Below, in pieces: positions 6,717-38,765 of a DNA stretch of 64,000 nt. The notes beneath the pieces were generated by a model, which had not been told where the DNA came from, did not search any database, and was given only the letters and a program-made list of their open reading frames with translations. This DNA comes from Mytilus trossulus (taxonomy: Eukaryota). The DNA is taken from contig NC_086381.1 of assembly GCF_036588685.1 (NCBI RefSeq), positions 32,364,001 to 32,428,000 of the forward strand, written 5' to 3'. The first letter of the stretch is position 1. Each line of letters opens with the position of its first letter. Both the position numbers and the translations under genes were made by a program.

Positions 6717-9700
6717 CTACACGTCTATTTTGTTATTATCTCCACAAATTCCTGATGTCGCCTCGTGGTCACAAAATGAAAACTCGGGTAGCTGCGTCAT
6801 ACACGCAGTTGACCGTTTAAAAATATCTTCATGTCTGAATTCGTAACCAAAATGGATATCAACATTACACATCTCTTGACCATCAGATTCCCTGCAAAAA
6901 AAATCAGCCGTTGTGTTAATGTGGTATGGACATCTTAAGTTTATCTCTCATTTTTGCATATGTGTTTTGTCTTTAGACTGTTTACATGCCAGTTATTTTG
7001 CTATGTTGGCATAATTGTTTGTTTTATAGTGATTCAGATTATAACACAATGTTGACTGATGTACATTACTTATAATATATGTTTGTTTCGTTCGCCCATT
7101 GTTGTTAACATGGTTAATATGATGGAATTGTAACCGACTGTCAAACAAGTGAGATGTTTAGCTAGATGTAAGACGCCATCTTAGCGTAAGAGAATGTCTG
7201 TATCAAGTCATGAATATGAAAACTGTTTTTCCATTCATTTGATGTGATCCTTACGTATTGTTTTAGCAATTTGTTATTGAACATTCTGTTTTTGAATTTT
7301 TCTTGGAGTTCGGAATCATTTGTAATATTATTAGTTTTCATAATTGGTGTAAAATAAACAGGTTCATAGATATAGGGAAAAAATATTGAATAGATACGTT
7401 GCATATTTATTCCGAGAAACAGTTTTTAAGTATGGTTCACTTGCTTTTCACCCATGAATCAACAATATCAAAGTAAATATATCAAACGACATTTTTTAGG
7501 GTGCAGCCAGTGAGGCAGGAATACAAACCCTTTCGGAAAACCTTATCAAGTTCAAACACATTGTTGTCCCTATCCATCTGAATTGAACTTTCGTGCTATT
7601 AAGTATTGTCTGATTTTTTCCGGCTATTATCGATCCATTTGCATTAACGCAAACAATACAGTTAGGTTCTGCTACTACATATATAAAGTACTCAATCTTA
7701 CCCGAATAGAATTGGCTTGTTATCTTTATTAATATACAGACACTTTGCAGCCTATAAATAAAAAAATGTACAGTTAATAGATTTTTTATTTTTTTAATAA
7801 TCGCTTTAAAATTTGAGCTTTTTGTATGATGTAATTACAATATAGGATTTACTTTAAATTGATTATTGTTTTTGTATACAGACACACGTAAGACCGCTGG
7901 TTTTCTTGTTTGAATGGTTTTACAAAAATTATGTTGGGGCCTTCTATAGCTTGCTGTTCGGTGTGAGCCAAGACTTTGTGATGTAGACGGTACCTTGACC
8001 TATCATTGTTTACTTTTTACAAATTGTACATTGCGTGGAGATTTGTTTAATTAACACTTATATCAAATTTACTTATATCTATTAACAAAAATCTCATAGT
8101 TGGCTGCTGAAATACAAAAACAAGTGGTCTATTTAGAATAAATGTATGCGTATTGGTCAGTTTCCCTAATCAATGTTATTAGCATATCATATTTCTTACC
8201 AGGACATCTCCATGTCGTACGTCAATTGCCCCTCCAGGTACTGGTAATAACACCTGTAAAAGGTCAAATGTTTCTTATTGAAATAGATAAAACTGTAATA
8301 AATATAGATGAGCTTTACACATATTTTATATATATCACTGAAAGCTAGATCAGAACGTGTCTTGCTTTTAAATATTTGAAATGGTGTAATTATGATTATA
8401 TAAAAAAGAAGATGTGGTATGATTGCCAATGAGACAACTATCCACAAACGACCAAAATGACACAGACATTAACAACTATAGTCCACCGTACGGCCTTCAA
8501 CAATGAGCCAAGCCCATACCGCATAGTCAACTATAAAAGGCCCCCATAAGACAATGTAAAACAATGATGGTTTAAATGCTTATTAAACTTTATATTAAAA
8601 AAAATGTTACGTATTCGTAAGCAAACCTGAATTTTTAATAACCTTATTCCTTTTTTCTTATTCATGAAATTTCATACAGCCTGAATCTACACATATAAAG
8701 CTATGTACGATCGAATGTGCAAATCTTATTTCATTCATATTCAATATGTTGACGTCAGTTTCTCGATATAAATCTAACATTCAGAACTATCGGATATACA
8801 AAAAGTTAAAGCCGCCATAAGGTTTAATATTTTTTTAATGTACCTTAAGAAAACAAAAATCGGTATATCAAGAACTTTATAGTACCAGTTATTCTCTCTT
8901 GTGCAATATCTGTAAAAATGTCTTTCTTTAGTTCGGAATATTGTTTTACTTATATTTGAATGTTTCTGTTTAATTTATTTACCATTTTTTTTCCAAATTC
9001 GGGATGATTTACAGTTTGGCATATTGGACACATGTCTATTGTTCATGTCTGTGTCGTTCTCTCTCTATATATTTTTGTTATTGTTGGCATTATGTTGCAT
9101 ACAAAGCGAAGTTCACCTCACGTTCCCCCCTTATTAATATTGTTTACATTTAGGTTATTCGAATGTTCAATAGAGACGAGAACAAAGTGATAAAATATGC
9201 TTAATTTCAACATTATCTTTGTTACTTTGTGCTTTGAAAGTGATGTCGCATGTGTTCATGTTGTGTTTATGATGATATGACAATCCTGCGTTCTTCTGTC
9301 TTAAATCAGCTGATGAAACTTCTGACTTCCAATTGTAAAATTGAGAATGGAAATTGGGAATGTGTCAACGAGACAACAACCCGACCATAGAAAAAAACAA
9401 CAGCAGAAGGTCGCTAACATGTCTTCAATATAGTGAGAAATTCTCGCACCCGGAGACGTCCTTCAGCTGGCACCTAAAAAAATATATACTTCTTAAGTGA
9501 TAATGAACGCCATACTAATTTGTTGAAGGTTTATTATGAGGTAAAAGATCTAGATTTATATAGGATCCTGAAAGATCTCTTAAAGAACGGAATATTGTGA
9601 GATCCTTGCAAACGGTAGTTTAGTGATATTGGTTTTAATATATCTGTATACACAACTAACCTTAGTTTGGCCTTGTGTTAACTGACTCGCCATTAAGGTC

Positions 9701-12700
9701 CAAGTACCGTTTCGAACTCTATACATTTCAGCCAAATATCCTGTTTAAAATACAATTTTAAAAATAAATTTGCATATAGAAATCACTTCAGAATCTACTA
9801 TATTTTACCATTAATAAGCATAATTCCAGCAATATTGGTTTTACCCTAGACAACAGAATGGACCGGAGTGTATTCTTCAGGTTACTTTAGATAAGAGAAA
9901 ACATGAAGTAACGATAACTGATGTTTCCTTGCATGGTCAAACTTTACAACAAAACGCTACAAATTTGTCTTTTGCTTTATATTTATTGAAATAAACTGAA
10001 TATGTATGATCATTGAAAAGTGTAACATAATGCAAGCTCTACTAATACTTACCATAATGATGTGTATGTAATTGAACAGCAAATGCAACAACATCAGGCT
10101 TACTCCAGCGACAAGCTGTTTCCGCAAAATATCCTACATCAAAATTAATATGCATGTATCTATAATTTATTAATATGTCATAGGTCTTGCTGAAGGGAAT
10201 CAAAAATAGTAAGTTTTTGTGAATGTGCTATACTTCAGTATAAATTATTAGCAGTATAAAATTTCAGAGATGTGGTAGCATTATCAATGAGATAACGAAA
10301 GTTGTAAAGGAAATGGATCGAAATATTACTAAGAGATTATCAACTTCCACAGTTAGAAGAAAAAAGAAGATGTGTTATGATTACTAATGAGACACCTCTA
10401 CAAGAAACCAAAAAGACACATATATAAAAACTATCGATCACTGTTCGACCTTCAACAATGAACAAAGACCATACCGCATTGTTAGCTATAAAATACTGCC
10501 AAATGACAAGTTTTCAACAATTCATTCGTCATATATATGCATATCTTTCCTGTGTGATTATGTTCAAGTAATCGATGTTGACTTATAAGAGGAAAAGCCA
10601 AACAAATTACAAATACATCAACAAAGAGCTCATATCACACTTAAAATAAACTTACAGGTAGAAATAAAATAGAAGCATCATTTTGTTTTAGAGAGCGCAA
10701 AAGCTGTAGGACGCAGCGTATTTCCAAAAAGTAGAACATATACATTTTCAGTCAAGAAAAATTTAAACAAACATTTTCCTTTACATCACGACAAAATTAA
10801 GACGATAGAATAAACGTACCCTTTTCCTTATTGGCGGGAATAAATCCTTCAGTCAACAGTAAATGAGTTTGGTAGTTATATTTGGTGCTGAGTGATAAAA
10901 ATAAAGTGTACATTAGTGTGAAGGAATTATCAACAAGAACAATATTATAAATATTTGTTTCCTACCCTTATCGTTTACCATTAAAAGTGATATTGACAAG
11001 GAACTTTCAGCAATTCTATTTTTCAACATACCATTTACCTCGATACATTATCTATCTATTTTATTAGAAGTTCAAGATAAGAACCACTACTACAAGGGGT
11101 AAAAGTCTGGTCTATTGTTCTTTCGTTTATGTGTTATTCTGGATGTGCTGTTGTTATTCCTTTTTTAATTCGAAATTGAAAGTAATAATTAACGATGTCT
11201 TGTTCATTTCAGCCATCAGTATTATTCAAAATCAAAATAAAGCTGGATTGTACAAAACAAACTTATAATAAGTTAATTTTAAGTAGTAGAATACATCAGA
11301 TGCTCAAGTTAATGAAGATAGTAATATGATATTTGACATATTTGTGTTTTAAGTAATTAAATTACTTACGGAGTTCTGGTAAATGTTAACGTTACATTCA
11401 CTAAGGGATAATGAAAATCTGAAATAAACGTCACAATTAATCAAACATTATTAAATCAAAGATCATTCGCTTTACCGTTAGATATGTGTTATTTCTATTA
11501 ATTAGTGAAGATTAACTCAAATGTTTGTCTATAAAAGGGTACGACCGTAATTACATGTAAACTGTTCGTGTTTACGAAATATTAAACATATGCTTAAAAA
11601 TCATTTGTTTAACTTTATTCGAAATTGACTTATTGATTGATGGAATGATGGATTGGTGTTTTATGTCCGGTGACAAGTATTGATGTTTGTTAAAGATGTG
11701 AACAAATTATATAGGTATCTGTTGTATTAGACATTTGGCATGCCACTTGAAAATCAGTATAGACTGGAAAAAGAAAGAAATTTGGTCGAGCAATAGGCAA
11801 AAGCCGACTAAATGCAACCCTGTGTATCGTAACATGTGTAACGTCCTTATTTAAACAACCGTTTATAGAATTCATTTGCTACTAATAAAGATAACCTTCC
11901 AAAATACAATTGTTCTCCTATTTTTTTTTACTCCAATTAAAACTAGCAAGTAAATGAAAATCACAAAAATACTGAACTCAGAGGAAAATTCAAAAAGAAA
12001 AAATCACTTATCATTAGTACACTATTTTCATTATGGAATATGAAAATAGTACAACAACACTTTTGTATACCTGTCACTGCTGCTTTAGCGTGCATCTCAA
12101 AAGTAATATGCCTCATTAGGGTGGAAAATCCGACTTTAAGTGATACGTCTGAAAAAAAAAGAAAAGCAATATGAATAAAAATAAAGTAACGAATAATTAT
12201 AAAAAATAATTGTATAGTGTTGGCATTTTTGTGTTCAAACAAATCCCTTAATATGCTCGACTACAGTCATATTGGGTCGATGATAATTATAGCTGAATTG
12301 GCTCCAGGCGACGACACATACTAGTTAGGCCTTTTTCAACTGATTTTTTTTTAGTTTGTTCTTATGTTGTATTGTTATACCACTGTTCAAGGTTAGGGGG
12401 ATGGTTAAGATTCTGCTAACAAGTTTTACCCCGCCATATTTAGTATGTATATGTCCTAAGTCAGGAGCCTGCAATTCAGTGGTTGTCGTTTGTTGATGTG
12501 TCACATATTTATTTGTCATTCATTTTGGTGTACATATGTGTAAATAATGCCGTTAGTTTTCTCGTTTTGAATTGTTTTACATTTGTCATTTTGGGGCCTT
12601 TTATAGCTGACAATACGGTATAGGATTTAATTTACATGTACGAAAACACATAAGACTAAAATTAGACTAATACATGACTAATTATTAACTTACTGTGTTA

Positions 12701-15700
12701 ATTGGTATTTAAATACATGTAACATCATATAACCCCTAAACTTAGTAATGTGAGGCGCATGGCCGTTATTTACCTTTAGGAAACGTCATTAAACCATCTT
12801 CAGGTTTGTAGTAGTCATCAAATATCAAAACGCTTACTGCCCCACCTTTGCAATATTTTCTGTTCTCCGTACATTCCCTACAATAATGTTTGAAATATGT
12901 CATAAAGGGTTATTTTTTTGTAATAAGAATCAGTTAACAATCAATATGCATATGTACTTGAATTATTGAGTTTGTAATGATGTCAATGTTTTCTAACCAC
13001 GAAAAGAATATCAAAATTAAATTGTAGTGTTGTAATTATTTTTCGTTTTTTTTCTCTTAAAAAACAGTGTATAAAAAAAAAAAATCCGGCGCATACTAAG
13101 ACTATCTAATGAAAAAAAACGGTATCATTTTTAAAGAATTCTATATAGATATTATTTATATTGAAACTCATTTTATCCATTTTTATTTTATATTAATGTG
13201 CATTGGATGATAGTCATGCAGTAGTTTACATAAGAGGAAACGATGGTTGTCCGTCGGAAGGGGACGATAAATGGCTGACCCGTGTTATTAGAGAGCCATA
13301 TCTCTTGCACGTTTAAGACACCCTTGTAGATTTCGGAAAAGAACAGGCTAATGCCGCTACAAGGCAGCACTCGCACTCGGAAAGTGAAAAGGTATTAATA
13401 TAAGTTTCAAAAAACTTGTTTCCCAATCCACTATAAATAAATATGTTTAAACTTAACTAGTAATTTACAGTTGTCTCTTCTGATCTCAAAATAGTCCTGC
13501 GGAAATCAATACAATTTTACTCATGATAAATCATTTTTTTAGTAGTTAATAAAAAATGTTTTGTTAATTGAATACATATTTTGTTTTTAAAAATGTCCAG
13601 ACTGAAATATCTTACCATGGTCGATGACTTGCATTATCTTCAAGTTCTTCACAAAAACTTAAAGCTGCATGATGTACATATTCATGATTAATTTCAATTA
13701 AGGTGCTCACTGAAAGGTATAAAATCATTTACATAATAGTAATTGAGGTCTGTAATTGAAATTTTGGAGTTTATTTGAATGTATACGGTGACGAAACTTG
13801 GTCTCAAGATGTTAATTTGATGGATAATATAGGACCAACATCAACATTATTTTTCATTCTAAAGCAAAACTAATTTGGCGATCCTTTCAAGTATAGTTGA
13901 CATTAGACAGATTAAATCATTTGCCCGAGAAAGGCCATTTTATGTGTAATCATTAATTTGATAACTGCCATTTTTGTTTAAATTGTTTGCTCGAGAAATC
14001 CCATATCTGGCTACTGACATTATTCTTGGGAATACCAAGTAATTTTCAATAGGAACGTTGCAAGCATCCATATGATTATTTTGAAAAGGTGAACAAATCT
14101 ATTGTATTGAAACTGAAGATGTATTTACTCGTGTCTTCAATGATATGCAGAACGTTATATTTTGACAATAATCAAGGATTTTGGTCATTTTTCCAATATA
14201 TTCTCGGCACCTCATCTATTGATCTAGTACTTACAGACATATACTTCGTCCAGTTCTTCTAAATATCTTGTGTAGCAAAAATATTGGTCGGGCTTCAAAA
14301 AAGGGTTAAATAATACAGTTAATCGTTATAGACGTAGACAGATACCAACGGAATGCAATTCGTTTCACAAAAAAAAACGTTAAGGTGGCTCGTGGGTACA
14401 AAAATTTTAGCAAAAAATTAAACCTTTATTTTGTCATTACAAATTTTATTTATTACACTTTTAGTTGTAACTTTATGATATGGTACAAAAAAACAACCCA
14501 AAAAATGATTTGGTTTGGCCCCAAATGATTTTAAAAATTGAAAAAGCTCCAAATTATCTCCCTTTGGTGCAAAAATGCCATTTTTTGGCCTTAAATTTGA
14601 AATATCTTTTTTAACTCATCGGTGACCTATATTTTTTATTATTATTTTCAAATTAGCTGTACATAAACTACATAATTGTAAAATTTAAGCGATTTCTTAT
14701 ATTAGATTATTTTTTTATTTCGATATTTCCTCTTTTTCTCCTATTAGTTCAACAGAAAAAAAGGACATTAACAAAAATGTATGCTTCTTCCAGAGGCAGA
14801 TTTTAGCTTAAATGAACGGTGACTCCATTTTTTTATTTCATTTTTTTTTTAAAGTATATGATAAAGTTCATTTATGAAAAAATATAGCGAAATCCTATAT
14901 TAGAAAAAAAAACAACATTTATACCCAGGAGCCCCCTTAAATGTACAAAATGTAGTAAGTCTTATCAAAATTTTAATATCATAAGTTATACTATGTGTGT
15001 TTCGCTACTGACCCCCTTCGGACCCAAATAGGGTTAGTAGAATCCCCATGAATTTAATTCACCCTCTATGGATACGTACGGGGTCAGTAGTTAACCTATA
15101 ACGAATTTATCGCACGCTAGACTTTATCTACTGCGTTTTGTTGAAAAATAAACAATGAAACACAACAACATCAATAAATGACGTCACCATTAACTCGTCT
15201 TGAACCCCCTATGAAATTTACTACCCCCTACGGTCTCATATGGTGTCACCACGTGACGGCATTTAACCATGCACAACGTGATAATTTACCCGGGGTGCGA
15301 TAATGTGAAATATGGACCTTAATCGCTAAGTGAATAAAAAAGGCAACAGTAGTATACCGCTGTTCAAAACTCATAAATCCATGGACAAAAAACAAAATCG
15401 GGGTAACAAACTAAAACCGAGGGAAACACATTAAATATAAGAGGAGAACAACGACATAACATTCAAATGTAACACACACAGATGTAAACTGTTATACATA
15501 TTTGAATTTGAAATTTTGAATACATCAAAAGGAAAATATTATATTTGAACTATAAATTTAGACTTTTATTTTTAGCAACGATATTTAATTAAATAAACTC
15601 ATCATAGATACCATAATTGAAATTTTATATTTGCACCTGACGCGCGTTTCGTCTTCAAAAGACGCATCAGTGACGCTCAACTAAAAAAATGTCAAAACGG

Positions 15701-17294
15701 ACAAACAAAGAACGAAGGTGAAGAGTATTGTTTCGACATATCTTGTATAACGTTTAACCCTTCTAAAGATCGTAAGTAGGATAGAAATGAGATTCTAAAT
15801 TCACACCTGTGAGAAAATAATCACAATCTTATCAATAGATATAGTTTTAAAAGACACCTTGTCCATTGTAAACTATTGTTGAATTCATCATAGATATACT
15901 TAATATTTAATTTAAGAGTAAGAATGGGCAAAATTGTTACTAGCGCAATGTCAGGTACCCTATGAAAATTATATTACGGATAATTGGCTTTTTAATAATA
16001 ACCATCTCGATAAAGGCTGAGCTTTATACCTAAGTAAGGCTTCTGAATACGTGCATGTTAGTACTTTCATTTCTTCAACCCTTTCATGTTGTTTTGCAGA
16101 CATTATTTTTAGTTGTCCGAACCAGTTTGCATATATTAACATAATAATAATGAAAGATGTGGTATGATTTCTTATAATAAAACTCTCCACCATGGAACAA
16201 TGGAATTGAATTAACAATGATAGGTCATCGTACGGGCTTCAATATTAAGCGAAATCATCTGAAATACCAACGTTACCCCTTGACAGTTGCGTTCTCTGTC
16301 ATTGAATGGGTTCCTGGCCTGATTTGATGATATCAAGCTAGTAAGTTAAGTTTAATTATCAAGTGACAATCGTCTTTAAATATGTCAGAATGTTGTTTTC
16401 TTAGCTGTTGAAACGAATTAACTGTAGGCCAAACACCTTTTATTGTGCACTGCTGTTTTATAATTATATTTTGGAAGAATAATGAGGTTTTGATTTTGCC
16501 ATTTGAACAGGGACCTTCAATTTAGATTTTTTTCTTGGGAGTTCCGTATTTTTTATATTTAATTCTTACACATAACGACAAAGAAAGTTCAAACGTATCA
16601 TATTTTTAATCGTTAAAACAAAGTAGTACCTACTTCATATATCTTGATAGATGGGTATGATAGCTTCATTTTATAAACTTCTTGTCCATTCTCTCCATAA
16701 TGAGCTGTTATATATGGTATCTCCCTCACACCTGATACTACAAACAAATTAGATAATGATTTGACAAGCCGAGGTTTGACAGAATTTAGAAATGTTTTAT
16801 CTGAGACAATGGTATGAATACTTTTGACCAGACGTTTCAAGAAAAATATAGTCTAAGATTCAAACCAACATATTATTTCAAACAAAATAAAAGACATTAT
16901 TCTATAATTCATCGCTTTAGAATTTAGACTATCTGTAAAATTATTGTTTTTTCGGCTATGCCGCTTGTGTGCAAAATTTCCTTCAGTATAACGTGGCTAG
17001 ATTCCAAAATGTTCACCTGATAAGTTACAGCTATGTAATTTTCTTCGGTTTTATCGGGAATTGAATTTAGTAAATAGTAAATGAAATACAATTAGAGTCA
17101 GAAAACAACTTCTGAAACTCAATAGATGTAAATATAAAACCATGCGACGGACACTTAAATTTTTTTATTCACCCTAGGCTAAGCCCTATTCTGTATATAC
17201 ATGATTATGCTGGGCTTGAAATAAAAATTATGTATTATTAGAAATTCTTACCTGCAACAGGTAGAACAAAAAGCCACATAGCGAATTTATTCAT
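6717..17294 (-). CDS. Secreted PHM-like copper type II ascorbate-dependent monooxygenase, paralog A (13 exons, 345 aa)
   Basis: Exons 17294-17252, 16737-16634, 14292-14235, 13709-13616, 12877-12774, 12148-12071, 11418-11370, 10887-10820, 10133-10053, 9740-9661, 8253-8200, 7751-7702, 6891-6717. All introns GT-AG, phases compatible, 1038 nt, no internal stop. Signal peptide MNKFAMWLFVLPVAVSG, then PDQYFC, YVHHAALSFC, FEMH, AFAVQLHTHHYG, YRVRNGTWTL, GDVLAAKC, EMCN. These align with rat PHM DTYFC, TVHHMLLFGC, LQVH, FAYRVHTHHLG, YRVRNGQWTL, GDILAARC, EMCN. AATAAA on the minus strand at 6615-6620. Confidence 0.92.
8400..8565. repeat. Representative copy of the abundant AAGAAGATGTGGTATGATTGCCAATGAGACAAC interspersed repeat
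   Basis: Related copies near 1720-1990, 7890-8080, 10365, 12325-12620, 26010, 31375, 33185, 38100, 44520, 45060, 53150 and 53608. Confidence 0.8.
13225..13450 (+). mobile_element. SINE body fragment (conserved central-domain type) in a PHM-like A intron
   Basis: GTCCGTCGGAAGGGGACGATAAATGG..GCACGTTTAAGACACCC..GAAAAGAACAGG resembles Deu/Meta-type SINE cores; no tRNA head visible. Confidence 0.4.
14384..14936. mobile_element. Non-autonomous TTAA-targeting DNA transposon (Kolobok-like) in a PHM-like A intron
   Basis: TTAA on both sides; imperfect TIRs GGTGGCTCGTGGGTACAAA and TTTATACCCAGGAGCCCCC. Confidence 0.65.
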
Positions 17295-18548
17295 ATTTAG
17301 ATAGTCTGACCAAACGTTCAGTTTAACCAATATGAAATGTTTGAAAAATATTGTTTTCTTTAATACGTTCTGGAAAATGAGTTTCGAGAAATGCGCATCC
17401 TTTTTTTTGATACGCAAAAACTGAAAACAATACAGGACACGAATTAAATCATTGTTTACCTTAGATACAAATGTGATAAAAATAGAACATGAAAACGAGA
17501 ACATCAACAATAAACAAATTCATCAATGTCAAACTTACGAAATAAGTTACGACTACGATAGCATGTTGTTAGGGGAGACTCTGTTGTATTAGAAAATATG
17601 ATAGCTCTCACGTTATAGTTTCTAATTCTGGTATACATGATATATAATCGTTTCGGTTCAATTAATATTTTAGAAACAATATATTAAAGATTTCAATAAG
17701 AAAAAAAACCCTTCAGACATAGATTGGGATTAGAACTATTTATGTTCGATATTACATATCGAGCACCTTTTAATTTGCAATATTGTTTTCGGCTAAATTG
17801 TAGCACCCAAGTCTGAATTGATCACAGCTTAATGAGCACAAAATATAAGAAACAAATTAAACACTAAACAAAAACTGTGTGTTGAAATGTCACGAATACA
17901 ATAAAAGTACTTTACCCAAATCATCGACTAACTACATAGCTTTATTTATGTTCATATACAGTATTTTCGAATAATAAAAAAAAGATGACAATGCTGTCCT
18001 GAACTAGATACTAGTTTTGGTAGGCCTTATACATACTGTTTTGCAGATACAAAAAGTTATTGCGATGAAAACGGCAGTTGGAGCTATAGCTATCTGTACC
18101 ATGTTATATTGGACAAAATACAAAAGCGGGAAACTACATGCTCAGGCGAAATAACCTTTAGACTTTTAAATACAGTTGTCAAAAAGTATTATTATCACAT
18201 GTCTTAAAATGTTAGATTAATTATCATACTTAAGAACATTGTCCGGTAACTAGGATGTCGGTTGTTGTCAACAACAGTAAAAAGGGAAGTCGTTTATGAT
18301 TGTAAACAAAAACAACACCAAGCAATAAATCAAAGCTTTACTATTTCGTAGAACCATACGATTAAAATTTCACAGAAATACTTAAACACCTTATGTGTAA
18401 TTTATCATCATGTTTATATCCGTATTTTTTCGGTCGAAACTTTGTATATATAGGTATAAACTTTACCATTATTGTTCATAATCAACATATCAAGACAAAC
18501 AGTGTATTGTGACTGATTTAACATTGCTTTTTCTCTACTGTCTCTACT
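17295..18548. promoter_or_regulatory. Divergent (head-to-head) intergenic region shared by PHM-like A and the prepropeptide gene
   Basis: ATG at 17294 (-) and ATG at 18549 (+) point away from each other about 1.25 kb apart; TATAAA at 18455 for the + gene. Confidence 0.55.
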
Positions 18549-24910: not shown

Positions 24911-26816
24911 ATATCCAATATTTCATTATTCGTTAATCTAATAATTCACTGTTTGCATTCGTAGTTTTTTTTACTAATTTATATTAGATATTCACAAAGA
25001 GGTCAGATAAGGCATGCACATGTTTACAAAATTAAGATATCAGTATCAACATTTCTGTTACTTACACGTTTGCTTAAGTTACTTTTTAAAACAGAAATGA
25101 AGTATATATTATATATTTTATGACCGAAAATGTTTTTTTGGAAAAGGTGAAAATTGTCGATATCAGAAAAACGTAATGGGCAATAAGACTGGAAGGAATG
25201 TGTGAAACGGCAAAAGAGGACATGGAAGGGTTTGCAATGCCGACCAGATACACACAGAACAGTCATAGACATTTGCGCTGGCAATAAGGTCATGTTTTAA
25301 CTTTTTCTATTACTTGTACATGCTGATCCTTGGCATATTGGCAAGAGATTTACACCAAATTACAACTTGCAATTTGTCGTAACTGGACATTTTTTCTACG
25401 AAGTTGTACGCTTCAATAAAACATTTAATTGGAGTTTTCTACTCTCAAATGTTTACCAATAAGATGTTTGGTCGATATATGAATGGATAACAAATATCAT
25501 ATACAACAAAAAACGATAACCCCTCCAGGCTACAAAACATGTGAAAGTCATACTGTTTATGATAGAAGCAATTACCTGATCAGATACAAAATATATATAT
25601 CAACAAATAAAGGCAACAATAGTATACCGCTGTTCAAAACTCATAAATCCAGGGACAAAAAACAAAATCGGGGTAACAAACTAAAACCGAGGGAAACGCA
25701 TTAAATATAAGAGGAGAACAACGACCGAACACTGAAATGAACACACACAGAGGAGGACCAAGCACTAGACAAAATCCCACGAGAACAACAAATATCGACA
25801 AGTACCGTGACACGTCTTATCGCAATTTGAATTTTCACTCAAAAATAAGAGAAAACAAACGACGCAACGTCAAAATGTAAAACACACAGAAACGAATAAT
25901 AATATAACAATGAACACAGACAAAATTGTTCTATCATAATTATGATATTAGTTGATTACTCTCAACTATATTTGAAATCGTTTGTTTGTTGTTGTTCGAA
26001 TAATATATAAAAAGAAGATGTGACATAAGTGCTGAGGAGACAACTCACCAAAAGAGACGGCATAGTTATAAAAGGCCCCGAAATGACAATGAAAAAAATT
26101 TAAACGAGAAAACTGACAATTACCATGCATACATATTACTCATTGTCATGGTTTGGCTTAACATATGGTCATTTTTGGTTTTATCAGCTTTTAAACACTT
26201 GTTTTTGGTTATCTGACAATTGCAGATAACAGCAAGACAATAAAAATCAAAACTAAGGACATAAAGACTCATACAACCAAACCACATTTACATCAACAGT
26301 TATAAAAGATAAATAAGAATCAACATGAACTCCACTAAAAACCAGGAGTAAAATCAGGTGCTCCGGAAGGATAAGCATTTCCTGCACCGTATACGGCACC
26401 CGTCGTGTTATTTCTTTGGTATGTTCGGTAATGATGGAGGGTTATAATGACCGAGGAAGAATATCAGATATGATTGCTTTTCCTAGATTTTGATATTTCA
26501 GTTTTGCATTGTGTAGGACAAAAATCAATTAGTGTAGTCTATGTATAAGTTGAGATTTCGTTACATCAAATTGCGCAAAACCTCACAGGAGGGTTGATCT
26601 CTGCCAAGCATGCTTATCCCGATCACATTATTAATGTGCCTCCCAGTGATATCACACTACTGTAAATGAAACTACTTTAATAAACAGAATAAAAAGAAGC
26701 GTCACATTTGAGTGTCATTAAGTCACAAGACACATATTTGATAAAATGACGCAACGAAGGTCGTTAAATTTATGAGTCATTACGTCATTGGACACAGATT
26801 GTAGACAATATAGATC

Positions 26817-27415
26817 AACACAGACTTGAGAGTCATGATGTCAACACCGACTTGTGAGTCATGATGTCAACACCGACTTGTGAGTCATGATGTCAACACA
26901 GACTTGTGAGTCATGATGTCAACACAGACTCAGAGTCATGATGTCAACACAGACTCAGAGTCATGATGTCAACACAGACTTGAGAGTCATGATGTCAACA
27001 CAGACTTGAGAGTCATGATGTCAACACAGACTTGTGAGTCATGATGTCAACACAGACTTGTGAGTCATGATGTCAACACAGACTCAGAGTCATGATGTCA
27101 ACACAGACTCAGAGTCATGATGTCAACACAGACTTGAGAGTCATGATGTCAACACAGACTTGTGAGTCATGATGTCAACACAGACTTGTGAGTCATGATG
27201 TCAACACAGACTCAGAGTCATGATGTCAACACAGACTCAGAGTCATGATGTCAACACAGCCTTGAGAGTCATGATGTCAACACAGACTTGTGAGTCATGA
27301 TGTCAACACAGCCTTGAGAGTCATGATGTCAACACAGACTCAGAGTCATGATGTCAACACAGACGCAGAGTCATGATGTCAACACAGACTTGAGAGTCAT
27401 GATGTCAACACAGAC
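26817..27415. repeat. 25-26-bp minisatellite, about 23 copies
   Basis: ACACAGACT(TGA/TGT/CA)GAGTCATGATGTCA units. Confidence 0.95.
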
Positions 27416-28945: not shown

Positions 28946-29138
28946 GCGGCATAAATGTTTTTTTTCTTATCTTAACGAATGTTATCTATGTATCACTGAA
29001 AAATTCTCCATTTGAAATTATTTCGAATTTTGTTTACAGTAAATTTGAAGAAGACAATGCCTGTATTTTCATGTCATTGTCGAAGTACCGGATACTAGGG
29101 CAATGCTATGCCTTGAACTTGAAGTCCACAGGCAAATA

Positions 29139-29961: not shown

Positions 29962-30668
29962 TATATAAAGTTTGTGATAGAAATGATATAAATGATACTA
30001 CTTTTACTACCACTGATGCGTATTCTAATAATGTATGTCGTTTTAGTGATGCTCACTGACAAATATTTGAAATTCAAAAATCTAAAACAAAAGTGTTAGA
30101 GCTGATAAAAAAAGTGAATAAATATCCTGAGTTCAAAACGCCTTTCTTGATTTGTTTTCATCAGGAACGCTCAAACGAAAATATTTGAAAGGTAAGTAAG
30201 TACACTCATATAACAGTTAAAAAGCTATATACAATTTAAAGAACCCAAAGATATAGCCAAATACATCAAAGGTCAACAGTGTCTGTCTTATTTACGGTTA
30301 AGGTTAGAAAGGTTTGTTAGGCACCGAGTTAATGACTATCCTCAAGTACTGAAAGTCACCAAAAGAGGTATTTATTCGGATATAAAAGGAAAACAACACG
30401 TAATAAATTACATGCGTTAAAAAGCATTTATTCAATAAAAAGAAAGAAAGAAAAAACTTTTGAGAGATTATTTGTTCAGTTATTAGAAAAAAAGTAGGAT
30501 GCATAATTGGGGATCCTGTATTTTCCAGCTAGTCACATTAGATATGACGTTAAAGATTAAAGTCAAAAGTATTAGTCCACTACTGAGAAGCTTCACTGAT
30601 AATGTTCGATTATGTTAACATGTTATTAAAAAATAATAGCATATCAAAGTTACGCCGATCATAATAAT

Positions 30669-33600
30669 TTATCTATCACAAACAGCTGCTGTCTTGTCGT
30701 TACTGCAGAAGGTGAAATCCGGTGAGTTCGAAATGCAGCCAGGTGGACGGGCAAAATACTCCTGGTATTGTATGTCATATGCAATACTCAGCTGGAATAT
30801 ACAGGTATCTTCTGACCTAAAAATAATTAAACAGTCATTGTAATTGAAAATAAATTTGACAAATACATATTTGCAATAAATCAAACACGGCGACTGTACT
30901 TATCTATTCAATGTAAAAATCGCATTCGCCAGCACTTATATATATATTGTAGATATAAAATTATATGTTATTCGGGTCTCAGACGGGGTATATACTGTGA
31001 CATTGCCAGCACATAGTTTATACCCCTGATCCGGGAATGTCGCTCTGCACTCATATTGAATTTACTGACCCCGTTTATATCATATAAGGTCACTAACACA
31101 CTATGTAACTAATAATATAGTCGTAAAAAGTGCACCAGCGTAGATGCATATATTAATAAAATGAATAGTAAGATAAGTAAAAAAAATATTTTGAAATTGT
31201 TAATGATAAATGGATATATATCCATCTCTCTACAGTATATATTAAAAGTTTTTTCGTTTAATTCATCAATTTTGTTAGCTGAAGTCACCAGTAACGTACG
31301 AATGGTCCGATGTATTCATGTTATTGCAGGTTTTGATATTACTATAGTTTGAATTAACTTTTTACCAGAAATATAAAAAGAAGATGTGGTATCATTACCA
31401 ACTAGACAACTCTCCACAATAGGCCAAAGTGACACAGACGAATATAAATTTCTTTGTGATTATCAGTTAGCCATCAGGCGAAAAATTAGGATTGTTACCA
31501 GGTCAAAGAGCAAATATTTTTCGCTGTTCATATTTTTAGTGTTAGGATCCATCGTGTAGTGGGTTGTTACCTTCAATTGCCACACTATAATCCACAGTTT
31601 ATCTGATTTAGTTCTAGATCTGTGACACTCATCTTGTTTTTAATTTGAGTTTTTGTGCATGAATAATAAAGACATGCAACTCTCTTCTTATTGTCAGCCC
31701 ATTTATACTTACTTAAGATCGATCGTTTTCCCTTCGTTATTGATAAACAGACAACGTGAAGCCTGCAATCAAAATCACAAAAATAGTCACAGTTGTCAAT
31801 TTAAAAAAAAGTAAAAAGGAACAAGCTGTATGCAAAACTAAATTCCGAGAACACTAAGCGAGGTACTGTAACTGAATATCTTTCATTTGAAACAAATAAG
31901 GATGCAAATATTAATATTTTCTGAACCAATCTTAATAAAAAAAAATACGAAGAAGATAACCACAGTTATTGAGATAACGTTATCAGGGTAATTTTGAAGT
32001 CGTGATATTAAGACTTTCAGAAAAAAAAATACCGAATTCCGAGGAAAAATTAAAACGGAAACTACGTAATCAAATAGCAAAACCAAAAGCTCAAACACAT
32101 CAAATATATTGATAACTGTCATATTCCTGACTTGGTACACGCATTTTTGTATTTAGAACTAGGTGGATTGAACATGTAGCTAGCTAAACCTTTTACTTGT
32201 ATGACAGTCACATCAAATTCCATTATATTGACAACGATGAGTGAACAAAACAACCAGACATAACAGGTAAAAATGTAAAAAAAAAAAGGATACAACAGTC
32301 AACATCGTGATATAATCCTAATCACTTTACAAAACAAACAAATATGTAACAAAGACGCACAAAAAGGCATATATCAAATATATCAAATGTATTCATTGCT
32401 TTTTTATTATTCGACTTTATCTATGTATGTTAACTCTTTCCATGAAGGATTGAAAGATTTGTAGTTTTGGGATTCAATAACCATTACAGGCTCATGGTAA
32501 GGTTAACATTTAGTAGAATATAGAATCGAGCGTTTCAGATGTGGTATGATTATCAGTTGATTAACATGTAAACGTCACACAGGTAGAAACAAAATAAATT
32601 TGTCGTTCAAGGATCTTTCCGATTTGAATTTTCAGTGTTTTGTGATTTTACATTTTAAACAAATTTATATGCTTCATATGGTAGGAGTAAACTTGCTTTT
32701 ATTCGACTTGGAATCATTATGGGACTTGTTTTGTCTTCAAAATTAAGTTGTCATTTAACCGTTGAAGTTTCTACCAAAAAAATAGTTTCATGACTGTTTT
32801 AAAGTGAAATAAAAGAGAATATATTAATTCTATCATCAAATTAATAACTCATAATACTTACTAAAACGTCACCAGGTCGTATTTCTATCGGTCCGTTTAC
32901 GATATCATACCATACCTAAAGATAAAAAGATTTATCATATGTTTTGACATATTAAACAAAACATGTGGCTAAAATAACTCTATACCATAAAGGTAGCGAT
33001 TTACTTGTATAATTAGTGCGTTTTGTACATATAACTTGTGTTTTGCTTAAAATAATTCAGAAGATCAAAAGCAAATTAAAAAAAATGAAACAACACAAAA
33101 CAAAACACCAAGATGAATCATTAAATTATAAAACCCCAATCTAGTAACTATCTTGAAAATCCTAAAACATTGTGACGAGAAAATAGATACAGGAAGATGT
33201 GGTGTGAGCGCCAAATTGACAACTTTCCATCCAAATACATAAAAAAGTAAACCATTATAGGTCAAACACCGTTTTAGAATAAATTATTTGTCTCTGAATT
33301 TGCGAAAAAAATGTAATCACAATCTAATAATGGTAGTTTTGTGTTTTATTGTAAAACTGTAAACAATATAGCAAATGTATAGCTCGTGCATACATACTTA
33401 TTTATAACTATTTCAAAATGAGATTTTCATACTTAGTAAAGTGTGCGATTATCCACTTCCTGTCATATTTATTTAAAAAAAAAAAGTGCAAATGTGTTAC
33501 ATGTGAAATAATTCTTGAACATATGCTATGTTTCGGAATTTTTACATTCTGTCTTCTTTTAATGGCATAACATTCTATATATCAATATCTAAAAAAAAAA

Positions 33601-36600
33601 AAATGATCCATATATACACCTCAATTTTTTCTATGCATAAAATATGCAGACAAAAAATTAAATCTATCTGAAAAACAGTTTTTGTCGATAAAGAAACATA
33701 GATATGTCCTTCTAAATTATATTTAAAAAAACACCTTTTGCCTTTCCCTTGTTTTCTGACCACCAAGGTATATCCAACTGTTATTTCGAATAAGAAATCC
33801 TTCAGCAAAAATACCTGAATTAGAAGTAAATTAAACAAGTTATATAGTGATCAACAAGACAAATTATCATTCGTAAATAAGACATCCTATTTGAATATGT
33901 TCGAGAAAATCTTCTACAATGTAGTCATTTGTTTTGAACAAACAAAAGATTAGCATTTTTCTCAATTAAAAGTAAATCTAGATGAATAGAACGGGTATCA
34001 CATGTGGAGCAGAATCAGAAATAATCAATTTCGACCTCTTGAGTTCACAACGGTCTTCTCCCTACTGAATCTTTATTTGGTAAGTACAGTTTTGAAAAGT
34101 TTTGTTGATACATATGTTCAAATTAATGTCAATAACGAAAAAACGCTGTAAGATTAGCAAATAATAACAGATATAAAACATTGATGCAAACGCGGTTTGC
34201 ACTTCTATGATATAAATTATGAGTATGCTTTTTAACAAATGTAATTAAGTTTTTTGAGATTAAATTCAAATTACTCACCATGTACATGTGTATGGGCATA
34301 ATAATGAAAGGCAATCACTTTAGGTCTTTTCCATTCGCAACCAACATGTGTGAAGAAACCTAAATAAAGATGATATAATGGTCTACTGTTACAAACTTTG
34401 ACTTAAATGAAGAGTTGTCTTAATGACATTCACAATACATCTTCTTATGGCCATATTACCTCATCTGATGTTTTCAATATTTGTGTACATGTACTCATTC
34501 TATAAATTCGTTTTATAGTAAGATGTTTTATAATGTTAAACCTTTTTTCACGTAGAAATAGCATTCATTCTAGCTACACAGGCCACTGTATTTGATGTTA
34601 CTCTACATATTACCGTAGAGATAAAATCAGTATTTAATAAATTGAGTGTGACCAAGCCTTGTTCCTGAACTTCTTCACCTAAAACGTTTTACAAAAGAAA
34701 TTTGAAAAGCAAAGTTGAGAACAGAAATGCAGAATATATCCACCTTAAGGGCATAAAACAGCCGAATGCAACCAATAGGTCATTAGCCAAGCAAATAACT
34801 CCATCAACAGGAGGCGGTTTACAGCCAGCCCATGAACAAAAATAGGTATTTGTTCCTTGAAAACGAAAAATACGTACTTGAATAAGTAACAATTTCTAGA
34901 ATGATAAGCCAAATTTATTTTAAGTGAACTTAACATAAGTTATTGGTACCTTAGTTTTTGCCTACTTTCAAATATAAAAAATAGAATATTATTACTGGCA
35001 GTAACGCATTTGACTTCTGAGCTGATGATACCATCGATAGCTAGTAGCACACCAGCAGTTTCTAGTGTGTTACTAAAGCATAATTACCGTAATCCATTTG
35101 AATTGTAGATAGGTTTGGACCAACTTTAGCAAACCATGCTTCTTCAAATTTGGGGGCTACTGAATATGTAATTAACGAAATTGTCCCTATCTTCGTATTT
35201 TTTTGTAATACTGTATTTATAAGTAACATTTCGAACTTGCACAAGTACATACCATTTGGTTTATTGGCAGGAATAAAACCGCTATTGCAAAGTAGGAATT
35301 TCTGGTAGTTATACTTTGTTCTAAAATCAATTGAACAATAAATTATATTTCTAATAAGCTGTGTGCATATTTTTGGATTATTATTAAAAACAAGGGAGAC
35401 TGCTTATGCCAATTTGTCTTCTTTGTTCAAAATGACGTGGATCAGTTCAATTCTTACATACCATATGAACAAGAAGCTGATACATGGTACAAGACACTAA
35501 TTGAGGAACAATTTGTTAACAGCAATCTTGGAGATTCAATATGGTAAACATGATGCGCGTACTATCATATTCATCTTAGTTCTCATCATCCTTCTATCAT
35601 TATGGGTAGACTTTACATAGATAAATTCAGCCGTATAAGAAAAGCAAAATGAGAATGTTAAATTAATGTATGCCTTTTTGTGCTTCTTTGTTACATTTGT
35701 TGTTTATGTAGAGATATTAAGATGATAACACAATATTGACTGTTGTACCCCTATTTTTGACATTTTTACTCTTTGAGTATGTTTGTTTTGTTCATGCATC
35801 GTTGACAATTTAATGGAATTTGATGCGACTGTCATATAAGTGAGAGGTTTAGCTAGCTATAAAACCAGGTTCAATCCACCATTTTCTACATTAGAAAATG
35901 CCTGTACCAAGTCAGGAATATGACAGTTGTTACCCATTCGTTTGATGTGTTTGGACTTTTGATTTTGCCTTTTGATTTTTGATTTTCCTTTTTTGAATTT
36001 TCCTCGGAGTTCGGTATTTTTGTGTTTTTACTTTTTTTTATATCGGTCCTACATTTGTGAATTTCAAGCTTCAGATTTGCATGTGAACAGTTATAAACAA
36101 TTGAACATAGAAAGAACATCAAATGCTGTTGTTTCGTCGACTTATGCATTTGGAATTCCATATAATATATTTGTTAGCAATAAGATAATACAATTGAGTT
36201 TTAAATATTAGAAATATCATCTTTTGAATTAAAAAACTTAAACAATTTGAGCAAATTTGTACGAATAATTAAACACCCGGGAAATTAAGTTTCATCAAGT
36301 TTTTGATAAAATTGATTTTGAATAAATCAATTCTTAGATCTTACCAAAATTGTTACATAAGAGTATTTTTAACTTACGGTCGTTTCGTAAAAGTTAAAGT
36401 TATATTAGCCGGCGATGCAGGTTCTGTAATAAAATAAACACTTTAGTTACGATTGGTACTTTAGAAAATACATATACATAAATTTGTAATCAAATTTCAA
36501 CATGCTGGGGATGCAACTTTACCCTGAGAACACTTGATTTTGTGTAAAGGTATCCAAGTGTTTATACTTTCAAGATTGTCAGCTATCAATATTACCACCT

Positions 36601-38765
36601 TATTGATTTATTTTACAATTTTATTGTTCCGAAAAAAATAAAATCACAAAAATACTGAACTTAGAGGAATATCAATTCGGAAAGTCCATAATCACATGGC
36701 AAAATCAAATAACAAAACGCATCAAAAACGAATTGACAAGAACTGTCAGAATCCTGACTTGGTACAGGCATTTTCAAATGTAGAAAATGGTGGATTAAAC
36801 CTGGTTCAATAGCGCTAACCCTCTCACTTTAACGACAGTCTCATCAAATTCCGTTATATTTACATTGATGCGTTAAATATACAGACACAATAAATAAGAT
36901 AGTCAAAATATGGGTACATCAGTCATCATCGTATAACAATTTTAAAAGGAACAATTTAACAAAACACATAAACATACAATATCTACAACACATTGAATGA
37001 GTTGGTTTTTTTTTTGTTGGCTACTTTCTTGAGAAAGTTTACCTTTTTGTTTCTACGCTGGACGATTAGGTCTGAAATCACCCTCTCTTTCTGTAAGATT
37101 TCGTTTTGATCATATTTCGTCTTGTTGTGTAGTGATTTATAGCTTGTGGTTTGTTTTTCTGTCGTTTTTCTTTTTGGCCATTATAATACATTAATTATGC
37201 ACGAGTAACATACATAAAACACCCTCCCATAGTAGCATCCTTTTTATGTAAAAGCCGATTATACTGAAGATATGTCTAGGTTGAGTAGCAATTTTTTTCT
37301 CCATTACATTACATATTTTAGTAAAGTACAAATATTCATTGAAAACCATTATATTTCAATTGTTTCTTTATTTCAGGTAATGATTTACAATACCTGTTAA
37401 TGGTGTGTAGAGATGCATTTGAACAATTAAGAAATATTTCTTTCCATTTCCACCAACCTTTGATGATACATCTAAAATATAATTTAATTTCAAACTTCAA
37501 TTCTGTTGTTTCCAAAATACAATGTATTTGATTCATCTAATATATCTTAAAGATACATACATATTGTCGTTGGTTCATGTCTGTCATCTTTCTTTTTTCT
37601 TTTTGGTAAATGGTTTCGTTATAATTTAGGCATTATATTGACAACGATGTGTTGACCCGTTATGGTGATCACCTCGTCAGATCTTCCAAATCTTTTTAAG
37701 GTTCCGAGGTAGGGACTACATTTTTAAACAGGTTGTTTTTTTGACAAGAACTCAATTAATCATGTCAGTACAGAATCACTAAATACGGACCTAGTGATAT
37801 GGGGACTAGTTGTCAATCAAAAATAGTTTTGACCCAGTGCCAAGTTAGATTTGATAATTTTCAAGTTTCCTAGGATTCTTTACGAATTTCATTTGGTTAC
37901 CTTGTTTTAAAGGTGTTAATAGTTATCAAAGGTACCAGGATGATAATTTAGTACGCCAGACGCGCGTTTCGTCTACATAAGACTTATAAGTGCCGCTCAT
38001 ATCAAAATATTTATAAAGCCAAACAGGTACAAATTTTTGAGTATTGAGGATCCAAAACTCTAAAAAATTGTTCCAAATACGGTTAAGGTAATCTTTAGAT
38101 ATAGGAAGATGTGGTGTGAGTGCCAATGAGACAATTCTCCATACAAATAACAATTTAAAAAAAAGTAAACTAGTATAGGTCAATAATAAGAAAATCCTTA
38201 GTTTTTCGAAAAATTCAAAGTTTCAAACAGATCCAATATATATAAGACGATGTGGTATACGTGCCAGTGATAAAACTTCCCATCCAAGTAATTATTTGTT
38301 AAAGTAAACCATTATTGTTTACGGTCTTCAAAACGGAGCCTTGGCTCTCACCGAAAAGTAAGCACAGTACACTTACAAAAAAACTTTTACGAACAGTACT
38401 GTAATTGTAGTGGCAGAAAATATTGGAAAGTCACGATATTAAATAACGAGGCTATAAAAATTTCCTTACATTGTTATGTTTTAGCTCGAACAAAAATGAA
38501 AATGACATCACAGGCTGTCAGTTATGTTTTTTTCTGTACTAGTTCCACGCAAATATTTTGCCACGCATGTATATGGATAACCGTTTAATAATTTTGGAAA
38601 GAAGTATGACCATATTTCTGTTGTAAACTTACCCGTAATTTTTAAAGCACTGATTAGTAATTACCTTTGGGAAGAACGTAGAGTGGTTTATCATTAGACT
38701 GGAAATTGTCTGTAACACTAAACTCAACATCATCACCTTTACATGCTAGTCCTCTTTGACAATCC
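30669..38765 (-). CDS. PHM-like copper monooxygenase, paralog B (exons 5-13 recovered, about 234 aa; exons 1-4 not found)
   Basis: Exons 38765-38665, 37471-37394, 36423-36378, 35320-35253, 34359-34279, 33814-33735, 32915-32862, 31762-31713, 30816-30669. Same phases and almost the same sizes as paralog A exons 5-13; frame open. Motifs KVGGNGKKYFLIVQMH, TKYNYQKFLLCNSGFIPANK, AFHYYAHTHVHG, IRNNSW, IRPGDVLASRC, SEDTCIFQL. Confidence 0.85.
35660..36040. repeat. Representative copy of a second interspersed repeat family (AAAATCACAAAAATACTGAACTCCGAGGAAAATTC end)
   Basis: Related copies near 7000-7330, 11960, 32020-32350, 36640-36960, 47215 and 51160-51380. Confidence 0.75.

Follow-up and report, generated by a model that had tools for sequence, protein, structure and literature searches.

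A multicopy peptide precursor gene beside PHM-like enzyme genes in the mussel Mytilus trossulus

Introduction

Peptidylglycine alpha-hydroxylating monooxygenase (PHM, the PHM domain of PAM, EC 1.14.17.3; rat structures 1PHM, 1OPM, and 1SDW) is the only known route to peptide amidation in animals, and its chemistry is thought to be restricted to C-terminal glycine. The two-domain beta-sandwich fold holds two copper sites, CuH (three His) and CuM (two His and one Met); Met314 is essential for catalysis, Arg240 forms a salt bridge to the C-terminal carboxylate of the substrate, and Tyr318 and Asn316 make secondary substrate contacts (PMC12164859). Dopamine beta-hydroxylase (DBH), tyramine beta-hydroxylase (TBH), and MOXD1-type paralogues belong to the same superfamily and are examples of the fold acting on substrates other than peptidylglycine. 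In the fungal dikaritin or Kex2-processed repeat (KEP) RiPP clusters (ustiloxin, asperipin, and phomopsin), a precursor with a signal peptide and many identical cores separated by basic cleavage sites is encoded next to secretory-pathway oxidases, namely, UstYa/DUF3328 proteins and tyrosinases; such clusters are not established in animal genomes. Yeast alpha-factor and honeybee apidaecin precursors also carry a signal peptide, tandem identical peptides, and basic cleavage sites, with units beginning with X-Ala/X-Pro dipeptides, but their genes are not known to be paired with a dedicated oxidase.

Here we describe a window of 64,000 nucleotides of Mytilus trossulus (GCF_036588685.1, contig NC_086381.1, here C9, positions 32,364,001 to 32,428,000), in which a multicopy peptide precursor gene lies head-to-head with a gene for a PHM-like enzyme. 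An initial annotation, made from sequence alone, had proposed a RiPP-type cluster with a 17-core precursor between two noncanonical PHM-like tailoring enzymes, A and B. We found all three genes where it had placed them and on the strands it had given, although B is incomplete; its interpretation was supported only in part.

Results

The precursor (18549 to 22124, plus strand) is a real two-exon gene. Tandem repeat analysis (TRF) found a 63-bp unit in 17.1 copies at 21063 to 22138 with 95% matches, and the plus-strand frame is open from the acceptor at 21001 to the TGA at 22122 to 22124. RNA-derived contigs of three runs from three studies (X1, X2, and X6) join 18600 to 21001 across a GT..AG intron of 2,400 nt (18601 to 21000), at word depths of 3615, 2552, and 903; the coding part of exon 1 is therefore 18549 to 18600, comprising the ATG plus the first 17 codons and 1 nt of the signal-like sequence. 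The coding part of exon 2 (21001 to 22124) encodes the end of this sequence, a short pro-piece ending in REKR, and 17 near-identical cores of 17 amino acids, 16 of them followed by RKKR and the last by the stop codon. After splicing, the N terminus has a short polar start with Arg, about 15 hydrophobic residues, and a small-residue cleavage region, as judged from the residues alone without a signal-peptide predictor. Of the 35 differences between repeats, 34 are synonymous and 1 is nonsynonymous, consistent with selection at the protein level. A probable 3' untranslated region (UTR) with AATAAA motifs near 22438 and 22495 extends over 22125 to 22480, an end point that does not rest on mapping, and RNA-like runs hold up to 75% of the sampled words of 21001 to 22480.

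PHM-like A (6717 to 17294, minus strand, including the stop) has 13 exons of 43 to 172 nt, at 17294-17252, 16737-16634, 14292-14235, 13709-13616, 12877-12774, 12148-12071, 11418-11370, 10887-10820, 10133-10053, 9740-9661, 8253-8200, 7751-7702, and 6891-6720, with the stop at 6719-6717. All have GT-AG borders, and each translates to a consecutive stretch of RefSeq XP_063399192.1 ("PAM-like"; here P0027), covering residues 1 to 345. The joint between exons 1 and 2 (17252/16737) is seen in RNA contigs, and a contig of run X1 reaches 17383, giving a minimum 5' UTR of 17295 to 17383. An open frame at 12343 to 12453 (minus strand) in intron 5 resembled the exon carrying the rat H172 equivalent, but copies with stop codons occur on both strands, in the window and elsewhere, and it is a dispersed repeat that is not part of the gene; the true exons are at 12071-12148 and 11370-11418, the former found through conservation among A1 (the A gene of the window), A3 (that of the third unit described below), and the B type.

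In Pfam profile searches, P0027 scored 59.7 bits for the C-terminal domain PF03712 (curated gathering cutoff, 23; E value, 3e-16) but only 25.9 bits for the N-terminal domain PF01082, below the cutoff of 30 (E value, 1.3e-5), although this domain aligns over its whole length to rat PHM. A matches rat PHM with an E value of 4e-26 at only about 25% identity. An AF2 model (pLDDT, 80.6; pTM, 0.78) matched about 25 PHM entries in Foldseek, with E values of 1e-19 to 1e-22 and TM scores of 0.61 to 0.78, indicating a predicted PHM fold. All six copper ligands are kept: H81 and H82 in exon 4 (13616 to 13709), H154 in exon 6 (12071 to 12148), H222 and H224 in exon 9 (10053 to 10133), and M295 in exon 13 (6720 to 6891) align to rat H107, H108, H172, H242, H244, and M314. 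In contrast, Gln220 (exon 9) replaces Arg240 and Asp299 (exon 13) replaces Tyr318, while Asn316 is kept as N297 (exon 13). A has a signal-like N terminus and ten cysteines, a count similar to that of PHM, but no PAL domain, membrane anchor, or DOMON domain. It matches DBH much less well than PHM: the 91%-identical M. edulis orthologue (P0002) gave E values of 4e-4 and 2e-25, respectively, and the A1 model gave Foldseek E values of 5e-15 and 1e-22. Many copies of the DBH, TBH, and MOXD1-type paralogues exist in this genome. Homologues of A at 39 to 45% identity were found in Saccostrea (oyster), Mya, and Pinctada, and the positions of Arg240 and Tyr318 are also non-Arg and non-Tyr in these proteins; that of Arg240 is Tyr or Phe in the related bivalve proteins and in the B type.

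The start codons of A and the precursor are 1,255 bp apart. Between the two transcripts lies a divergent intergenic region of about 1.1 kb (17384 to 18487), bounded by contig ends at 17383 and 18488, the latter followed by adapter sequence, and a TATA-like element at 18445 to 18460 lies about 30 nt before the precursor transcript start. The initial annotation had proposed RNA data on splicing and coexpression as a check, and both genes are transcribed and spliced in the same libraries: the spliced contig of A is in X1 and X2, and an exon 2 contig is in X6, with depths of 610, 374, and 142, i.e., 5.9- to 6.8-fold below those of the precursor. This is weak evidence for coexpression, because contig depth is a poor measure and the runs were chosen for holding the precursor.

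PHM-like B in the window (B1; 30669 to 38764, minus strand) has exons 5 to 13 only, with in-frame cores at 38666-38743, 37398-37472, 36377-36433, 35260-35319, 34286-34357, 33747-33806, 32862-32903, 31721-31762, and 30678-30812. No match to B exons 1 to 4, which hold the signal peptide and the HH copper ligands, was found anywhere in the window, because colinearity with duplicate unit 2 stops at 39280, a breakpoint inside intron 4 of B, as shown by blastn of the window against C9:32500001-32620000. Thr replaces the CuM methionine in B1, and the B type as a whole has Thr or Ala at this position and also lacks the equivalents of Asn316, Tyr318, and Arg240; the B-type protein P0028 scored 32.2 bits for PF03712, and the B type gave no hit to PF01082. 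An intact B-type gene (B') lies just left of the window (C9:32350958 to about 32363800).

The module recurs twice more downstream, with the order B'-A-precursor-B occurring twice and A-precursor a third time within 250 kb. The last exon of A matches only 7 places in the genome, and the precursor in near-identical form matches only 3, all within C9:32.35-32.60 Mb. The intergenic spacer is 97% identical to that of unit 2 and 70 to 76% alignable to that of unit 3, in which the start codons are 1,233 bp apart. The units are colinear by blastn at 84 to 98% identity, with a dS of 0.05 between units 1 and 2 and 0.45 to unit 3; A is under purifying selection (dN/dS of 0.26 between A1 and A3 at a dS of 0.45), and dN/dS between B' and B is 0.12 to 0.13. 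The third precursor copy has an open frame of 1,150 amino acids with about 53 units; in the 50 units analyzed, synonymous and nonsynonymous differences numbered 181 and 31, and much of the nonsynonymous part is K/R exchange that keeps R-x-K/R-R. Every one of the roughly 80 linkers in the three copies, except one RKKH, keeps this furin consensus, and the last unit ends exactly after the core in all three genes. Diverged precursor paralogues 1.08 Mb away (C9:31.306-31.310 Mb) keep the core motif but have no dibasic linkers in one gene, and no PHM-like gene was found within 31.29-31.33 Mb; a diverged paralogue (L048:6438-7471, minus strand) keeps the core motif but has RPQN-type linkers. No precursor homologue was found in the one protein search made, which covered proteins of 205 to 650 amino acids; an apidaecin precursor cluster was the nearest look-alike in the ESM Atlas (score, 0.77), which we regard as a lead only. 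No paper in the literature searched contained the core sequence.

Discussion

Our analyses show a gene module, seen so far only in Mytilus, in which a spliced and abundantly transcribed multicopy precursor gene is paired divergently with a gene for a protein consisting only of the PHM catalytic core, with both copper sites intact but without the Arg/Tyr pair that classical PHM uses to hold the C-terminal carboxylate of peptidylglycine. The pair has been amplified to three copies, two of them accompanied by an intact B' copy and a damaged B copy that lack the CuM methionine. That both products are secreted is suggested by their signal-like N termini, whereas release of the peptide, catalysis by A, and any modification of the neighboring peptide by A are inferred. 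The initial annotation was correct on gene order and orientation, on the signal-like sequences, on the missing substrate anchors of A, and on the cores ending in Leu rather than Gly; its proposal of two enzymes was not supported, as B in this window is a 5'-truncated copy that is not a credible enzyme.

The explanation we tentatively favor, although we consider it somewhat less likely than not, is that the precursor enters the ER, that a furin-type convertase cuts after REKR and after each RKKR, and that a carboxypeptidase trims the basic residues, which would leave 17 copies of a 17-residue anionic peptide ending in Asp-Gly-Leu. Its N-terminal Glu-Ala and Val-Pro dipeptides may be removed by a dipeptidyl peptidase, as in alpha-factor and apidaecin precursors. 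A would be made in the same cells, travel the same route, and use Cu, ascorbate, and O2 to oxidize this peptide or its intermediates at a site other than a C-terminal glycine, candidates being the C-alpha of the penultimate Gly or a side chain; this would not be classical amidation, for which the adjacent precursor offers no Gly-terminal product. The purifying selection, intact ligands, and predicted fold suggest, from sequence alone, that A is probably active, and the linkage is kept in three paralogous units, one of them old. However, no chemistry or peptide has been observed, and a complex prediction gave no verdict on physical interaction. The homologues in other bivalves, set against the lack of a precursor homologue in the length-limited search, suggest that the enzyme subfamily is probably older than this peptide and may have another substrate; linkage in three units can be explained by segmental duplication alone; and, with dozens of Cu2-monooxygenase exon hits in this genome, one chance adjacency to a repeat precursor is, by our rough estimate, not very unlikely.

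It is almost as plausible that the genes are coexpressed neighbors but not enzyme and substrate. In this view, A belongs to a bivalve-wide PHM-derived subfamily acting on another peptide, a protein, or a small amine, as for DBH/TBH, and the repeat precursor arose later in Mytilus beside it, perhaps borrowing the same gland-specific regulatory region, before segmental duplication copied the whole block. The shared pocket changes in oyster, Mya, and Pinctada, the derivation of all three units from one block, and the related precursor genes without a PHM-like neighbor are consistent with this, and the acidic residue at the Tyr318 position would suit an amine rather than a peptide carboxylate. Conversely, the only known substrates of the PHM branch are secretory peptides released at basic sites, which is what the neighboring gene appears to encode; A matches PHM far better than DBH; the head-to-head spacing is kept after a dS of 0.45; and, if both are made in the same cells, A will meet this peptide in large excess.

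We consider it unlikely that the repeat gene product remains intact as a secreted structural, adhesive, or mineral-associated protein, with the RKKR runs serving as charge blocks and A either irrelevant or modifying the intact protein. The RPQN-type linkers of the diverged paralogue, which convertases would not cut, the size of the third copy, typical of structural repeat proteins, and the very high transcript abundance would fit this reading, but the near-invariant furin consensus, the REKR end of the pro-piece, the ending of the last unit exactly after the core, and the Glu-Ala/Val-Pro start, which matches dipeptidyl-peptidase trimming signals, speak against it. That both flanking PHM-like genes are dedicated tailoring oxidases, with B performing a second oxidative step, is very unlikely. 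B-type genes are conserved under purifying selection, stay in the cluster, and are expressed as full-length transcripts in some mussels (P0028 and P0009, from Logan assemblies); however, the copy in this window lacks a signal peptide and the HH ligands, which contradicts the idea for this copy, its sister copy B2 has an in-frame TAG in the last exon, and all B-type proteins have Thr or Ala for the essential Met314.

The comparison with fungal RiPP clusters is by logic only, with no homology of any component apparent, and the resemblance to alpha-factor and apidaecin precursors is likewise without sequence homology, the peptide here being anionic and neither a Pro/Arg-rich antimicrobial peptide nor a pheromone. 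A more far-reaching possibility, which we regard as unlikely but which is not excluded, is that this locus is an animal counterpart of a RiPP gene cluster, in which a PHM-derived copper monooxygenase that has lost the carboxylate anchor carries out nonamidating oxidative chemistry on the peptide encoded head-to-head with it. This might be C-alpha hydroxylation of the penultimate Gly of the Asp-Gly-Leu end, followed by cleavage to an Asp-amide, or a side chain hydroxylation, with enzyme and substrate genes coregulated and coamplified as a unit.

A conserved, selected, and expressed PHM paralogue with intact copper sites but no carboxylate anchor points to a second, unknown reaction for this fold, and its position beside an abundant peptide precursor that cannot be amidated supplies an obvious candidate substrate. 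Even without the link, the precursor, which appears to be unannotated, is one of the most abundant transcripts in some mussel RNA libraries, making its inferred 13- to 17-residue peptide of interest in itself. If the link holds, the locus would be a rare example in animals of a peptide and its tailoring enzyme inherited and amplified as one genomic module, as in fungal and bacterial RiPP clusters.

The repeat precursor gene

The window occupies C9:32364001-32428000 of an AT-rich genome of 1.3 Gb, C9 being the contig that carries it, and it encodes one of two RefSeq proteins of Mytilus trossulus found in our searches, XP_063399192.1 (here P0027). A tandem repeat search (TRF) reported a 63-bp unit in 17.1 copies at 21063-22138. 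Read in the + frame, this array encodes 16 cores of 17 aa (EAVPSVKAVNVDLEDGL; one has Ile for Val), each followed by RKKR, and a 17th core that ends at TGA. An acceptor lies at 21000/21001, and the frame upstream from the cores encodes the tail of a hydrophobic segment and a pro-piece ending REKR. An ATG at 18549 opens 17 codons that end in a consensus donor at 18600/18601, and contigs of three sequencing runs, from three studies and with two organism labels, join 18600 to 21001, skipping 2400 nt with GT..AG ends, at word depths of 3615, 2552, and 903. These runs therefore contain RNA, and the two-exon model is correct. One contig ends at 18488 and is followed by adapter sequence, about 30 nt after a TATA-like element, which suggests the transcript start.

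Among 16 units, 34 of 35 differences from the consensus are at third positions and synonymous. We also considered the - strand open frame through the repeat (20981-22090), which shares third codon positions with the + frame and is equally silent in this array; it was rejected because it fits the larger paralogous array less well (157:55, against 181:31 for the + frame) and because the splice joint is GT..AG on the + strand. No protein of 205 to 650 aa in a collection of 5.8 billion proteins resembles the product, and no paper in the literature searched contains the core sequence; the gene appears to be unannotated.

PHM-like A

Comparison of stop-free segments of the two flanks of the precursor revealed colinear paralogous pieces with HTH and EMC motifs. 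Genome-wide and exon-level searches were uninformative: genome-wide six-frame Pfam searches with PF01082 and PF03712 gave no hit in the window at E <= 10, exon-wise Pfam searches gave only E 0.095 for one exon, and exon-wise single-sequence and profile searches of PDB sequences gave nothing relevant. The exons are too short and divergent, so these results said nothing against homology. RNA contigs gave the first junction, 17252/16737, with GT..AG on the - strand, at depths of 610, 374, and 4.9. At 17286-17290, RNA contigs of three runs (X1, X2, and X11) differ from the window at the second and third codons of A, in a manner that matches the "MI.." start of A2 (the copy of A in a second unit of the cluster) and of the M. 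edulis and M. galloprovincialis orthologues, so the contigs come from the paralogue or from sister species as well.

An open frame at 12343-12453 (-), first taken for the exon carrying the equivalent of rat H172, was rejected as a dispersed repeat whose translation mimics a conserved exon ending in a Gln-His motif; copies at 48467-48529 (-), at 53889-53999 (+), and at several places in two further loci (L035 and L047) carry stop codons and lie on both strands.

The exons of A were not joined for any search. Instead, an alignment of the last exon from six paralogues was searched against 1.84 billion representative proteins and returned full-length mussel proteins, among which P0027 matches the window exon by exon, with 13 exons of 43 to 172 nt, all with AG/GT borders, covering residues 1 to 345; all full-length analyses used this database protein. 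P0027 scores 59.7 bits with PF03712 and 25.9 bits with PF01082, the latter below its cut-off. It matches rat PHM at E 4e-26, while its M. edulis orthologue P0002 matches PHM at 2e-25 and DBH only at 4e-4, and an AlphaFold2 model (pLDDT 80.6) matches PHM structures at a Foldseek E value of 1e-22. In the alignment to rat PHM, H81/H82/H154 and H222/H224/M295 stand at the six ligand positions and N297 stands at Asn316, whereas Gln220 replaces Arg240 and Asp299 replaces Tyr318. A review states that the substrate carboxylate forms a salt bridge to Arg240, with secondary contacts to Tyr318 and Asn316, and that Met314 is essential (PMC12164859). The initial annotation, which had described A as a PHM-like copper monooxygenase lacking the Gly-anchoring residues, was therefore right on this gene. 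The gene itself is already annotated as "PAM-like" in four Mytilus species, but literature searches on mussel PAM-like genes returned nothing specific. Its orthologues include XP_071120582.1 (M. edulis), XP_076113533.1 (M. galloprovincialis), genes of M. californianus and M. coruscus, XP_062619988.1 (Saccostrea), and WAR05015.1 (Mya).

The canonical PAM gene of this genome was sought for comparison. The best Pfam locus, which holds the strongest Cu2_monoox_C hit of the genome (L051; C2:96349001-96358500, near 96.35 Mb), looks DBH-like (HHM..FHC and HTHMTG motifs) rather than like the canonical PHM, so no claim is made about the housekeeping PHM. The genome holds many Cu2-monooxygenase exon hits in tandem arrays on C2.

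PHM-like B

The window has B-type exons 5 to 13 only. Full-length B-type proteins exist (P0028 and P0009, from transcript assemblies) and match rat PHM at E 3.5e-16, but they have Thr or Ala for Met314 and also lack the equivalents of Asn316, Tyr318, and Arg240. Colinearity between the window and its sister unit ends at window position 39280, inside intron 4 of B, and no trace of B exons 1 to 4 was found in the window. The sister copy, B2, is complete but has an in-frame TAG in its last exon (L039:9451-9585, -, within one of the loci of the second unit), shortly after the position of the lost CuM methionine. Two intact copies of the related B' type exist, one of which ends about 200 bp left of the window. 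B' and B differ by a dS of about 0.5 with a dN/dS of 0.12 to 0.13; the Met-less type has therefore been kept by selection, perhaps as a non-catalytic protein, but the copy in the window is a fragment.

The larger cluster

The last exon of A matches seven places in the genome, all on the - strand of C9 between 32.351 and 32.575 Mb, and the precursor matches in near-identical form three places on the + strand. In 140 kb of additional sequence from this region, two more copies of the module were found (loci L036-L040, C9:32505463-32561298, and L042-L044, C9:32575161-32593613). The order is B'1, A1, P1, and truncated B1 in unit 1; B'2, A2 (RefSeq XP_063399196.1), P2 (a precursor with 11 cores), and B2 with its stop in unit 2; and A3 and P3, a precursor whose second exon is an 1150-aa open frame with about 53 cores, in unit 3. 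Units 1 and 2 are young (dS 0.05 to 0.07). They might be uncollapsed haplotypes; intron identity of 84 to 95%, a dS of 0.05, and different B structures make true paralogy more likely, although this is not settled. A3 is old (dS 0.45, dN/dS 0.26), and A3-type orthologues occur in M. edulis and M. galloprovincialis, so this duplication predates those species.

P3 has the same two-exon structure as the precursor of unit 1. Its ATG lies 1233 bp from that of A3, against 1255 bp in unit 1, and the spacer is still 70 to 76% alignable. The core peptide is identical in all three genes, although their signal and pro-pieces differ. Two diverged paralogues of the precursor with the same exon-2 start lie at C9:31.306-31.310 Mb (L048:6438-7471, -, and L048:9434-9748, -): one repeats a related core motif joined by uncleavable RPQN-type linkers instead of dibasic sites, and the other has RRKR/RKNR sites. 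No PHM-like exon is present within 31.29-31.33 Mb.

Other features of the window

A 441-bp tandem repeat (2.4 copies, 98% matches) at 40479-41536 begins with a tRNA-like stretch, although ARAGORN calls no tRNA; the same repeat lies next to A3 at C9:32573738-32574844. Minisatellites of 26, 21, and 27 bp lie at 26815-27415, 45495-45992, and 49794-50009, and the 21-bp array produces three overlapping open frames of 157 to 167 aa that are artefacts of the repeat. A 131-aa open frame at 62736-63131 (-) has a signal-like start and a Gly/Ser/Arg-rich body, with a weak Pfam match to the New_glue family (E 0.003, below cut-off), and may be another small secreted protein gene. Open frames at 54592-55251 (-) and 52080-52436 (-) look by eye like a retroelement polymerase fragment and a C-type-lectin-like fragment, respectively, but neither has a Pfam hit at E <= 0.01.

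Discussion

Our results show that the precursor and PHM-like A are both real, intact, and selected genes that are divergently arranged, present as spliced RNA in the same libraries, and co-amplified, and that both families are confined to this chromosomal neighbourhood. The initial annotation, which saw a 17-core repeat precursor between two PHM-like genes, was borne out as an observation. Its interpretation, that both enzymes may be dedicated to oxidative tailoring of the peptide, is only partly supported. Processing of the precursor by a convertase, a carboxypeptidase, and a dipeptidyl peptidase is inferred, as are the catalytic activity of A and any action of A on the peptide. The precursor/A depth ratios of 5.9, 6.8, and 6.4 in three runs are suggestive but rest on contig depths in runs chosen for holding the precursor, and a complex prediction for A residues 18 to 345 with two repeat units scored 0.01, which is evidence neither for nor against binding.

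We tentatively regard a tailoring relation between A and the neighbouring peptide as the leading possibility, although we consider it less likely than not. A-like proteins with the same pocket changes occur in oyster, Mya, and Pinctada, so the enzyme subfamily is probably older than this peptide, and this keeps the alternative, in which the two genes are neighbours but not partners, nearly as likely as the tailoring model. It is unlikely that the repeat product remains an uncleaved repetitive protein, and very doubtful that B acts as a second tailoring enzyme.

A is an annotated but uncharacterised PHM paralogue, in which Gln and Asp stand at the positions of Arg240 and Tyr318, whereas the multi-copy precursor and the repeated A-precursor module appear to be undescribed. 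PHM paralogues and multi-copy propeptides are each of a known kind.
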